A DNA stretch of 64,000 nt. Origin: Dimorphilus gyrociliatus. Lineage: Eukaryota; Animalia; Annelida. This document shows, piece after piece, positions 44,201 through 53,714 of the stretch. Position 1 is the stretch's first letter; each line of letters begins with the position of its first letter. The notes under the pieces are model-generated. The model had not been told where the DNA came from. It made no database searches and saw only the letters and a program-made list of their open reading frames with translations. Location: NCBI GenBank assembly GCA_904063045.1, contig CAJFCJ010000003.1:2280504-2344503 (forward strand). The letters are read 5' to 3'. A program made the position numbers and the translations under genes.

Positions 44201-44910
44201 AATAGGGCGGCGAATAGGATAGACTATGGAGCTAATAAAGACATATACTTCTTGACACTAATGATGACGAATAATTTTAAGGAAATTCGAAAATAAAGGA
44301 ATTGATTTAAAAAATATATATTATATAAATTTGCTTTCTAAGCTCGTATTACTAATTTGTTGCTTTTGCTTTTTCTCTAAATAAGCTAATATAACCATTA
44401 TTTAAACAATCGGAGTAATTTTCTTCGTTTAATATAATTAATAATAAAGTTCATTTTATTCAAAATCTTTACAGTTATTTCATAAAAAAGCTCTCATTAA
44501 AATACAATATCAGCGATCCGAATAAAATCATCTAAATGATAATCTGGTATAAGGGTGTTACCCAGATGGAAAGGCTTATGCAGATTAATTAAGAACCCTT
44601 CTGAAAAGTTTACTTAGGTTCTTTTGGCTTCAAGAAAACATCTTGCAGCCAGCATTCATCGTGTAGTTTTACAATTAATACTACCAGTTTAGTTTTTTTT
44701 GTAAAAAATATTATTTATGTTACTTGATGTTTATTTTCGTATAATTCTTTTTAGATTGATAATTTTTTTTGAACTAATTAATTACCTATGAACCATATTC
44801 AACTGTTAAATTGTTACTTTTTAATTCGAAAATAAATGTCCTAAAGATGGCGCCAGATTTCCAGACATGCGCACAAATTCGATTGGGAATTGCACACAAA
44901 TGATAGAAAA

Positions 44911-49761: not shown

Positions 49762-50380
49762 AATGTCATAAAACAGCGATATTACATGCCAATCACAATC
49801 TTTTACAACATAACAGAGATTTAGGCCTACTCCTTGTTACTTGTAATATATCATCATTAAATATATCGAAATTGAATAAAAGTCTAGAAACACTAAAGAA
49901 GTAATCTTGGATTGTAAAAACAAAATTCTTTTATATAAATGAAAATCTAAAAAGAATAAGTAGAGTAGAGTAAGCATGTTTTTCTTTCCATTCCATTCCT
50001 ACATCTATAAATAGAATGTTCTATTTTGTATTGCAACTGATAAATAATTCTGATTTCTCTCTCAAAATATTAGAATGCAAATTTATTGAACTTCATAGCT
50101 TTTTTTTGCTTTTTCAATGTTAATTGTCATTATTTGTATGTCAGACTTGCAGTATGCGAGATAGATTAGAAAGCACATTGAAAACTACTGAAGAAACAAA
50201 AAGAAAAGAACCACTCTAAAGCTACATGCTAAAAACGGAAGATGACTTTTTAAAAAAAAAGAATTTTATCATTATTAGATAGATAGATAAATAGATAGAG
50301 AGACGAAAAAAGGAGAAAAGAATTTTGGTTGTTTTTTTTTGTCGTTGTTTTCGTTATTTTCATTCTTAAAATATTCTTGT

Positions 50381-53196
50381 TTAAAAGCCAGCCAATTCGG
50401 TAAAGGTTTGATCCAAATTTTCGCTGATTGCCTTGTATTTCTCCTTCTCGGCGAGAAGTTCATCCTCCAATCGGTCGATCTCCTTCTGCAATTTCGAAAC
50501 GGCTCTCTCAGCCTCGGTGGCACGGTGTTCTGCCTCCTTCAGACGCGACGTCAGATCCCTGATCGATTCCTCGTAGCTTTCCTCTCTTTGCGATGCCTCC
50601 TGTTCGCTAATTTCCAAGGATTTCATGTTGTTGCCTACAACCTTCAATTCTTCCTCCAATTCAATTATTTTTCCTTCAGCAGCCTCCAAGCGGGCTTCTG
50701 CTCTTTCAAGATCCACTTCTGTAATGGCCAACTTTCTAGCTGCCTGTTTTATTGGAGAAAAGAAAAAAGGATGTGAAAATGAAATCTTATATAGGATCCT
50801 ACTTTCTCATCAGTACTCTATATCTTTTAAATAAAAAAGCAGATGTGATGAAGAAACTATTAAAAAAGAAACAAGTTCACACCTCTTCGTATTTGTGGTC
50901 TGTTTCTTCACCAAAACGGATCGTGTCTTCTAATTCCTTCTCGAGTTGTTGGATCCTTTCATCGTTATTCAAATTACGATCTTCAAGAACTTTACGTCCT
51001 CTGTATTATTGTCGATCTTCGAGTTAGTTAAAAGGCGGCATTATGTGTGAAGAGCACCGAGTCCAAGACCACGTACGAAATACGAAGAGGGGAACTATAT
51101 GGGGAAAATATAGGGGAAGGGAAGGGAAAAAGGAAAGAGGGTTGGATCTTTCATTCACCTCATCATATTTGCGATCGGCGTCTTCGGCTATGAACTTGGC
51201 CTCTTTCAGCTGCGTTTCGAGCGTATCAATTCTTTCGTCATCAGCCAAAGATCGGCTTTCCAATAACTTTCTTTCTCTAAAAACCACGAACTCTTTGATA
51301 AGAAAGAGAAAGAGCAAAAATAAAAGAAAAAAAGTCTCGGACTCGAACTCTTCGGCCAAAAAAAATAACAATAAACGAAAGCAAGAAACCGAATAAATGA
51401 ACTTTCACACATTCATTCATACAGGTAATCGTGGGAAGAAGACACCTATGGAGAAGACTCATTCAACCTTTCACTCTCGTCAGAGGCTTTCGATGCCTCC
51501 TCGAGTTTCGTATTCGTCTGCAGCAGTTTAGTCTCGTTATTCTCGTGATCTTCTTCTAGCTGTCTAAGGCGCTTCGTCAACGACTGAACCTCCGTCTCAG
51601 TCTGAAAAGAAAAGCCGAATTGAACGAGGTCGTTCAGAAATCTCACCTTTCAGTATCTTCGGCTGTTTTAGATGCTTTGTCAAGCGTCTCTGTTGCCGAA
51701 TCTAACCGCGAAGCAGTCTGCTCGAAATCCTCTTCTAAGAGCTTAATTCGACGAGTCAAAGCACCTACTTCTGCTTCGGCCTGTTTACGCGTTCATAAAA
51801 ACGGATTAAATACAAAAATTGACGCTTTAAGAAAAATTAGCGTCTAGAAAAACTTTTAGCATTAAAGAGATTATTTGTTAAGAGAAAGTGAGCACCCTTT
51901 TTAAACAGTAGCTTATATTTTTCAATTCCGAGCCAATTATGGTAAACTTTAGAGATGACGTTGATTTGAGAAGATAGGCAACGCTAAATAAGCCTTTATA
52001 TTTGGAGTGTAACTTTTCTAATTCTTCTCTAACGTCAAGATCTTCTCCAACGTCTTCGCAATCGGAAAAGAGGGAATAATCGTTGAGTATATAAGAACTT
52101 GAGTCAATATTTGTTGGAAGACAACTGCCTTCAGGTTCTGGACGTCTTTCTGTAGAGGTAACTGATTGGCTGAGAGAAGAGGGCGTGCCGGATAATGAAT
52201 TTTTCATTGTTGGTCTCTTAGAAGTTTTTGTGGTCTTTATGCGGCATCTGCATTCGTTACCTTCCGGAATCGATTCAATTGAAGCACCTCTCCTATATTT
52301 GGCATGAATAGGACAATCTTTCCGTGAAACAAGGATCTTTTTCCTTTTTTTTGTTGATGAGGCATCGCCCTCCCTGTCGATCTGCTTTTCATCAGATTTC
52401 TGTTTTCTTATCTGCTCACAAGAGCTTCTCAGATGAACGACATTTTCAAAATCGCATCCAGGACAAACGGAATGCGTTGAAGAAAGGGTGGACGGTAAGC
52501 AGGAAGACAGTTCAGTCGCCATTCGTTGGAAGAAAGTGCGTAATTATAACCGAATACAGGCCCGTAGTATGGCTGCCAAACTATTCGCCTATTCTATATT
52601 TAGATCGAGGCGAGCAGTATCGGATGTTAGGTTTTTATAGGCGTATGTACGTATAAAAATATATACTATATATAAATACACGTTTGCTTTCCAGATACCC
52701 ATGCAGACAGGCTAACTTTTGCAGTAGAAAGCGTATTTTTTTTACACTGCATGCCTGTTTTTTACCTCTCATTTTTTTACTTCCATTTGTTTTTAACTTT
52801 TCTTTCATTTTTCCTCTATAATTAACTAAGAAAAGTGAAAAGTTTCGTTATACTTACGTTGTTATGTTTTTTCTCGGTTTCTTCCAATTTTTGGGTGGCC
52901 TCTTCCAATTGAGTCTGAGATTGATCTAACTCACCCTCCAGTTGATTTATTCTTTTCTGTAGATCGTTGATTTCTTCTTCTTGCTGTTTAATGCAATAAG
53001 TATAGGGTATTAGGAAACAATATATATCTTTGCACAGTTTAACTTGGCTCTTTATGAAACTAACCTTGGCGTTCTTGTCTTGTTGATCCTTCAGATTTTG
53101 CTCGAATTGATCGGCTTTGTCCAATGCAGACTCCTTTTCCAGCTTCATCGACTGCATCTTCTTTTTGATAGCGTCCATAGTATTGGTAGCAGCCAT
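50381..53196 (-). CDS. TPM: Tropomyosin; exons 53196-53065, 52983-52858, 3A 51780-51647 or 3B 51601-51468, 4A 51276-51159 or 4B 51000-50883, 50743-50381
   Basis: [16 protein letters not shown] start, continuous heptads, canonical 284 aa from MDAIKKK, and all splice phases consistent. Confidence 0.97.
51896..52522 (-). CDS. Alternative internal first exon of tropomyosin (209 aa, low-complexity, Tm1-I/C-like) splicing to exon 3
   Basis: Same-strand ORF in intron 2 with an upstream in-frame stop and a phase-0 GT donor (AGG|GTGCTC) at 51895. The junction reads [18 protein letters not shown]|[12 protein letters not shown]. Confidence 0.8.
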
Positions 53197-53714
53197 CTTG
53201 GTTGATTTCTATCTACTTTCTTCCACTTCCACCGAGAAAAAGTTATGAAGAATCGAAAATTTCGATTTTTATTTGAAGGACCAACGAAGAATGCCGAATA
53301 GCCAGGATAGGACAGCCAACGATAGGTGGAGCTAGTATCGGTAAAATTATTTAGCTGGAATGTGCGTTATTTCTCTCTTACGGCTATACGCCTCTTCTAT
53401 AGGGGGTTGGGGTGGAAGATTCGTTTATAGACGGATTGGCTTAAAAATACGAATTCAGGGAGGCCTACCTATTTCACTTATTATTATGCACCTAGCATAC
53501 ATAGACAGGTTTTTAAATAAGGATCTAACGCTGTTTGAACTCAGTCATTTTATCTTTTTCCTACTATACTGGGTAATTGCGATTATTAGAAAGATTTGTG
53601 AAGCACACGATACTAGTCACATTAGTATCTTTGTTAAACTACAGTATACTATGATGCTTAGAGCTGTCATTAAACTTTTCAGAAAAACTGCTGATTCGCA
53701 TGTGTTTCATGTTA

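Follow-up and report, generated by a model that had tools for sequence, protein, structure and literature searches.

The atypical tropomyosin aTm1 (Tm1-I/C; SD21996p) of Drosophila links kinesin-1 to oskar mRNA, serving both as adaptor and as regulator, and it has so far looked lineage-specific; the protein 'is present in Drosophilidae' (PMC8247599). It contains residues 81-165 of Tm1-PG, and 20 unique residues (262-281) extend its coiled coil, with I267, L271 and L279 forming the hydrophobic core that contacts the kinesin-1 heavy chain (Khc), T277 looped out, and the bound Khc site described as evolutionarily conserved (PMC8247599). Residues 1-335 of the fly protein, i.e. the N-terminal region together with the minimal coiled coil, suffice for function and for Khc inhibition, and its low-complexity tail is 'limited to the Sophophora subgenus'. 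On Khc, aTm1 occupies the alternative cargo site (2 Khc : 1 aTm1). Here we describe a putative counterpart in the annelid Dimorphilus gyrociliatus, its head encoded by a single exon (the head exon) inside intron 2 of the tropomyosin gene, in a window of 64,000 nucleotides (nt; the whole stretch of DNA analysed, with its first letter as position 1) on contig CAJFCJ010000003.1 of assembly GCA_904063045.1, positions 2,280,504 to 2,344,503.

The tropomyosin gene occupies the minus strand of the window, and its exons were located by translation and by the splice joints present in RNA-derived contigs (Table 1). Exons 1 and 2 belong to the conventional isoforms only, the rod exons match Pfam PF00261, and exons 3a and 3b share the same phase, and the frame stays open with either. 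Within intron 2, the head open reading frame (ORF, 51878-52522) encodes 214 amino acids up to its stop and is preceded by a conserved in-frame TAA eight codons upstream of its ATG (52522). Its first 209 codons end in AAAAGG^GTGCTC (carets mark junctions throughout), a phase-0 GT donor after position 51896, to which the rod from canonical residue 81 onward is predicted to join in phase 0, with 204 residues following the junction. Serine, lysine and arginine account for 35, 20 and 14 of the 209 residues (17% Ser, net charge +6). The sequence-only reading of this DNA had described a Ser/Lys/Arg-rich exon of 209 codons in intron 2, with its own ATG and a phase-0 donor, and the ORF, the residue counts and the donor confirm that description. 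We consider it probable that the ORF is an alternative first coding exon, predicted to be spliced onto exon 3a or 3b, and that it gives rise to an aTm1-like, kinesin-1-binding isoform.

The relation to aTm1 emerges at the junction. Exon 3a alone finds as its best matches in the PDB the aTm1 chains of 7bjn, 7bjs and 7bjg, with 35.4 bits to 7bjs_C, and addition of the 25 pre-junction residues raises this score to 58.8 bits. The fly junction in 7bjs_C reads FSSDTMMKFNIIRNELHNIMNTQLKR^AESEVAALNRRI, and the junction-spanning peptide aligns the Dimorphilus ...^AEAEV with the fly FSSDTMMKFNIIRNELHNIMNTQLKR^AESEV; the anchored motif score was reached by none of 20,000 shuffles. The last 55 head residues alone yielded only chance matches to the glucagon receptor in the PDB (E 0.3). 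We then employed a family alignment, A2, holding the pre-junction residues of 26 family members and not a single tropomyosin residue. Searched against 177,635 PDB sequences, its profile placed 7bjs_C first (E 2.3e-5) and 7bjg_A second, with the next, unrelated, entry at E 0.25, and its alignment to 7bjs_C reaches the final position of the profile and stops where the fly junction lies. Homology between the head and aTm1 is thus visible only with the junction-spanning peptide and then with the family profile. Taken together, these comparisons support placing the head exon in one family with the Drosophila aTm1 head. The insect junction motif given in the sequence-only reading is real, being present in 7bjs_C as well as in beetle, leafhopper and amphipod proteins, and the A2 match places the Dimorphilus motif at the Tm1-I/C junction, as had been anticipated.

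The three core residues by which the fly protein contacts kinesin-1 are retained. aTm1 I267, L271 and L279 align with Dimorphilus I196, L200 and L207, and the second fly contact set, L296, L300 and L307, corresponds to L, F and L in exon 3a and to L, H and L in exon 3b, which makes exon 3a the likelier head partner, with exon 3b a possible alternative. Dimorphilus has one residue fewer before the junction than the fly, and this single-residue gap coincides with the position of the looped-out T277. The stretch from EL.N to the junction spans seven residues in 15 proteins (Dimorphilus, Paralvinella, Aplysia and others) and eight in 45 (all arthropods, Haliotis and Octopus). For structure prediction of the junction with AlphaFold2 (AF2), we used residues 175-345 of the public gene model DgyrCDS2459 (P0003) and an alignment of 11 sequences (A3). 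One helix was predicted from ORF residue 189 through the junction, with a predicted local distance difference test (pLDDT) score of 93-98. Congruent with a continuous coiled coil, the a/d ladder starting at F193 crosses the junction; in register, 20 of its 25 positions hold a hydrophobic residue or Ala, compared with 2-11 in the other registers. The head alone, predicted from a three-sequence alignment, reached a pLDDT of 33.8, a value that fits disorder and that derives from a shallow alignment.

In the arrangement that we propose, the head exon would probably be transcribed from an internal promoter in the block just upstream, and it would be spliced from its phase-0 donor (after 51896) to the acceptor of exon 3a (51780) or of exon 3b (51601). 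Whichever versions of exons 3 and 4 are combined, the product would be 413 amino acids long. It would begin with a mostly non-helical head of 188 residues, rich in Ser, Lys and Arg and bearing short Cys/His motifs; a helix of 21 residues would follow, lengthening the tropomyosin coiled coil N-terminally and in register, and then tropomyosin residues 81-284. Canonical residues 1-80 are needed for tropomyosin head-to-tail assembly on actin, and a product devoid of them would thus be unable to form the usual polymer. Instead, the extension would present the residues by which Drosophila aTm1 packs against the Khc tail. The product most likely works like aTm1, as a kinesin-1-binding, non-actin tropomyosin, and it may participate in RNA or cargo transport. 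We propose the kinesin-1-binding role because the fly contact residues are present and because aTm1 1-335 suffices in flies. The fly-type Asn/Ser-rich low-complexity C-terminal tail, supplied by an alternative 3' exon, is absent at this gene; the RNA contigs hold no alternative 3' joints, and there is one fused terminal exon with the canonical C-terminus. The intermediate-filament-like behavior of Tm1-I/C, which the sequence-only reading had brought in, should therefore not be transferred to Dimorphilus, as the tail needed for such polymers is missing, and the isoform is not a Tm1-I/C in the strict sense.

In addition to lying within the tropomyosin gene, the predicted Dimorphilus head resembles that of aTm1 in replacing residues 1-80 and joining at residue 81, in the coiled-coil extension of about 20 residues with the pattern KF.II..EL.N...LKR and conserved Khc-contact residues, in being basic or Ser-rich and, probably, in being largely non-helical. 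It differs in that no similarity is detectable beyond the last approximately 26 residues that are comparable in the solved fly fragments, and in the canonical C-terminus in place of the Asn/Ser-rich tail. With canonical tropomyosin (PF00261) the predicted isoform shares the rod from residue 81 to the C-terminus, exon for exon, but it lacks residues 1-80, which provide the head-to-tail overlap as well as the first actin-binding periods, and the 209 residues of its head are not tropomyosin.

We then assessed constraint on the exon by comparing the window with two related taxa, represented by Logan genomic contigs (P0001 and P0002; loci L001-L006). The head ORF is exactly 209 codons long in all three taxa, without gaps and at 83% nucleotide identity. 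The ratio of nonsynonymous to synonymous substitution rates (dN/dS) is 0.12-0.13 at a dS of 0.73, and differences at codon positions 1, 2 and 3 number 16, 23 and 67. Codons 1-40 are constrained as much as the remainder (dN/dS 0.09-0.12). Beyond the donor the picture changes abruptly: AGG^GTGCT is kept in the three taxa while the sequence past it is not, the following 115 nt show 63% identity with three gap openings, and the frames after ...CLKR diverge at once (5, 38 and 46 residues to the stop). Intron 1 is at 49% identity. Five of the six head-exon variants listed in one metatranscriptome contig fall at third codon positions. Judged by this pattern, in which constraint starts at the ATG and stops at the donor, the head is a protein-coding exon.

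Conservation also reaches upstream of the ATG. The block at 52523-52720 has sharp boundaries, and its identity lies far above the level of synonymous sites, compared with only 47-65% at 52750-52857 of the same intron. The block includes an invariant TA-rich 25-mer at 52652-52676 and one short upstream ORF of 37 codons starting at 52702. A search of the block against Rfam returned no families; two matches far below the gathering scores were rejected. We regard the block as a candidate internal promoter with 5' untranslated region (5'UTR).

Searching 1.84 billion proteins with a three-taxon head-exon profile (E <= 1e-3) matched 27 proteins, and a word search with the Paralvinella protein recovered 40 family proteins. 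Homologous heads are found in the annelid Paralvinella palmiformis, in the gastropods Haliotis (three species), Patella, Gigantopelta, Aplysia, Biomphalaria and Bulinus, in the cephalopod Octopus bimaculoides and the bivalve Pinctada, and, among arthropods, in the amphipod Hyalella azteca, the beetles Callosobruchus, Acanthoscelides and Phyllotreta, and the leafhopper Macrosteles. RefSeq isoforms are included for Haliotis, Patella, Gigantopelta, Aplysia, Biomphalaria, Octopus, Hyalella and Macrosteles, and many other matches are genomic ORFs ending in ...(K/R)R^V, i.e. read through the GT donor. Exactly 204 residues follow the junction in every complete family model. Spiralian heads have in common RPEPEG, YD.II.S..P.FSD, ERYHKR and IF.AAQM.NTNTM.KFAII..EL.N...LKR; in arthropod heads the shared part is the last helix, in which beetle and fly are nearly identical (127 bits), and the beetles carry RPEPEG together with the Drosophila-type helix. 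A 531-residue head-plus-rod ORF (P0042) on an intron-less JGI contig of 1,977 nt (L007) is direct evidence of a spliced head-rod mRNA in another marine lophotrochozoan. The proposal that an atypical isoform exists outside arthropods is hence upheld, with heads grafted at residue 81 in Annelida, Mollusca and Arthropoda, and the same distribution lends support to the suggested protostome ancestry; a head-rod system dating to the protostome ancestor or before would fit these data. A protein atlas gave scores of 0.78-0.84, below its own reliability line and hence to be read as a lead only.

The closest relatives by architecture are the long tropomyosins predicted in RefSeq and GenBank, such as Haliotis rufescens isoform X10 (XP_046340959.1), Octopus bimaculoides Tod p 1.0102 isoform X27, Aplysia californica isoform X10, Patella vulgata isoform X8, Hyalella azteca isoform X5, Macrosteles quadrilineatus 9A/A/B isoform X3 and Paralvinella palmiformis KAK2162088.1. 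They start with their own Met, show RPEPEG...P(L/I)FSD...KFAII..EL.N...LKR (only parts of it in arthropods) and continue with 204 tropomyosin residues. These entries are, however, automatic annotations with no stated link to aTm1, and the Dimorphilus head is shorter and more divergent, with NTNTMLKFAII replaced and EKLHSKY at the position of ERYHKR. The conserved Cys/His motifs of the Dimorphilus head comprise C8, H17, C20, C23, H30 and C35, followed by CPIH and CRC (residues 8-35 and 70-93; 52405-52522 and 52240-52320). In other taxa (P0045, P0047, P0024, P0010, P0013 and P0017), the heads show an N-terminal C..C...C..C and then HC(D/P)IH and (L)VCTC.

Turning to transcripts, RNA runs were ranked with the head exon alone, and the contigs of four of them (X1, X2, X3 and X10) were compared with 49800-53600. 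X10 is identical to the window and transcriptome-like; X1, X2 and X3 are marine metatranscriptomes. All are assembled contigs, from which rare variants are dropped, and they accordingly show presence, not absence. X10 shows every conventional tropomyosin joint. The sequence-only reading had expected a joint from 51896 to 51780 or 51601, and both positions are indeed true acceptors, of exons 3a and 3b, respectively.

Several observations weigh against the proposed isoform. The joint itself is absent from the contigs of X1, X2, X3 and X10, and the donor, GTGCTC, is weak and is crossed unspliced by X10 record 12, X1 record 4 and X2 record 15. The first of these, 1,122 nt at a depth of 499, runs unbroken from exon 3a through the head ORF into exon 2, and this depth for intron 2 is near that of the other introns (198-360), at 1-10% of the exon depth, which looks like pre-mRNA of a very abundant transcript. 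The word-indexed database contained no spliced protein from the Dimorphilus clade, only two genomic ORFs. Furthermore, the Dimorphilus head is the most divergent member of the family, at 35-46% identity to the other modules, its predicted fold in isolation (pLDDT 34) is uninformative, and a junk ORF at 44419+ matched the score of the true site when all six frames of the window were scanned without an anchor, so that the short motif alone is insufficient. We do not take the missing head-rod joint as absence, since the analysis covered assembled contigs only, and assembly could lose a minor spliced path. For Dimorphilus, we infer expression and splicing of the head exon from the comparative evidence.

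Of the competing explanations, the one that survives best, although we deem it unlikely, accepts the isoform as real and spliced and assigns it a function other than via kinesin-1, in the nucleus (through KKRKK), on nucleic acid or metal (through Cys/His) or as a modulator of actin filaments. Indeed, several short Cys/His motifs of the head are invariant and may be zinc-binding sites, and the KKRKK stretch may be a nuclear localization signal. The conserved HC(D/P)IH, CTC, RPEPEG and P(L/I)FSD are without counterpart in the solved fly fragment, Pfam matches no family on the head exon or on seven other heads, and kinesin binding is a prediction. Conversely, conservation within the family is highest in the Khc-binding extension, which retains the contact residues and to which alone, within the fly head, a function has been assigned, and the Khc site that it binds is the one described as conserved in evolution.

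It is highly improbable that the ORF is instead a separate, unspliced nested gene, whose 214-residue protein is never joined to tropomyosin. Such a gene would account for the RNA-derived contigs over the donor all being unspliced, but pre-mRNA from so highly expressed a gene suffices to explain a depth at the level of introns. The five, 38 or 46 residues that follow ...CLKR, depending on the taxon, are unconstrained, the last 21 residues of the exon form a heptad helix continuous with exon 3a, and the homologous heads of all other phyla continue directly into tropomyosin at residue 81.

The public gene model DgyrCDS2459 (CAD5113281.1) of D. gyrociliatus offers a further reading, in which the head exon is an internal cassette entered from exon 2. 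We could reproduce the model exactly from the exons of the window: it passes from exon 2 to a cryptic acceptor at 52411 inside the head ORF and leaves by the donor at 51896 to exon 3a, yielding a 462-residue tropomyosin with a 172-residue insertion (head residues 38-209) and dropping the first 37 conserved codons. A Pinctada model (P0067) is merged similarly. The 52858-52411 joint is nevertheless absent from the contigs of all four RNA runs, while the joints from exon 2 to 3a and to 3b are present, and codons 1-40, largely discarded by the model, are under the same purifying selection as the rest. Moreover, conservation covers the ATG and the 200 nt ahead of it, the RefSeq models and the mRNA contig of other taxa start with their own Met in the head, and the head-to-tail architecture of tropomyosin would not survive an insertion halfway along the rod. 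Considering the missing joint and the conserved first 37 codons, we reject the cassette and give it very little chance; DgyrCDS2459 probably fuses two isoforms into a chimera, and a Bulinus model (P0060), like that of Pinctada, looks merged in a similar way. Finally, the ORF might be a relic in decay, or a frame that stands open by chance because the intron is AT-rich, as the lack of specific expression in the RNA contigs and the capacity of AT-rich junk ORFs to mimic a short motif might suggest. This reading is effectively refuted by the selection test (dN/dS 0.12 over 209 codons at near-saturated dS, with neither indels nor stops in three taxa) and by more than 60 homologues, and we reject it as having practically no chance of being correct.

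With the alternative first exon as the preferred interpretation, the Dimorphilus sequence adds a new phylum to a known kind of protein, one that on the present homologies is protostome-wide. Among papers on 'atypical tropomyosin', no title or abstract refers to conservation beyond flies, and a search with spiralian terms was swamped by unrelated papers. The suggestion that the system is undescribed in this lineage hence holds for the titles and abstracts searched, but not for the annotation, where DgyrCDS2459 already includes most of the exon, mis-joined. More tentatively, and with slightly less than an even chance in our estimation, the kinesin-1-binding atypical tropomyosin may be an ancient adaptor, at least as old as the protostome ancestor and no invention of fruit flies. 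Its head would then hold an uncurated domain, about 90 residues long, that serves annelids, molluscs and arthropods by regulating kinesin-1, by binding RNA or by both. This domain would comprise the four blocks listed above for spiralian heads, in that order, often preceded by HC(D/P)IH and CTC. If the head and extension are common to annelids, molluscs, crustaceans and insects, the pairing of kinesin-1 with an atypical tropomyosin would be old bilaterian or protostome cell biology. The conserved head motifs would then be candidates for the Khc-inhibiting activity mapped to the N-terminal region in flies, the system would be open to testing in spiralian oocytes and neurons, and many tropomyosin gene models, the public Dimorphilus one included, would need correction.

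Table 1. Features of the Dimorphilus gyrociliatus tropomyosin gene and its head exon, in window coordinates
Feature	Position	Strand	Basis
Exon 1 (5'UTR and ATG at 53196)	53065..53292	-	Pfam PF00261; joint 52983-53065 in four runs; contig ends
Exon 2 (ends at canonical residue 80)	52858..52983	-	joints 51601-52858 and 51779/51780-52857
Conserved non-coding block directly upstream of head ATG	52523..52720	-	85-97% identity in three taxa (dS 0.73)
Atypical head exon (209 codons, own ATG)	51896..52522	-	ORF; dN/dS 0.12-0.13, no indels; 27+40 relatives
Conserved module in head, ORF residues 126-209 (RRPEPEG ... SLFSD ...)	51896..52147	-	alignment A2; profile match to aTm1
Last 21 head residues (189-209), N-terminal coiled-coil extension with I196, L200, L207	51896..51958	-	aTm1 alignment; AF2 helix; heptad ladder
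Predicted intron, head exon to exon 3a (115 nt)	51781..51895	-	donor GTGCT conserved in three taxa; interior diverges
Exon 3a (probable splice partner of head exon)	51647..51780	-	RNA joints; best PDB matches are Drosophila aTm1 chains; follows head in P0003
Exon 3b (mutually exclusive with 3a)	51468..51601	-	joints 51000-51468 and 51601-52858
Exon 4a	51158..51276	-	joints 50742-51158 and 51276-51647
Exon 4b (mutually exclusive with 4a)	50882..51000	-	joints 50742-50882 and 51000-51468
Single fused terminal exon, coding part and stop	50381..50742	-	canonical ...TELAGF end; coding ends at 50384

The RNA contigs also inform on the rod. Exon 3a was found paired with 4a (records 3, 11 and 19) and 3b with 4b (records 2, 9, 14 and 18), which suggests a coordinated choice of the two exon pairs. 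Beside exon 4a, at a low-complexity intron stretch (51300-51335), contigs of X1 and X3 break with long A-rich loose ends. As for the wider surroundings, the L001-L006 loci of the related taxa display the same tropomyosin and thioredoxin-reductase neighborhood as the window, and on L002 (10105-11204) and L003 (6838-7937) the gene order is as in the window, tropomyosin being followed downstream by a thioredoxin-reductase-like gene (Pyr_redox domains), with Vps26 lying further on.

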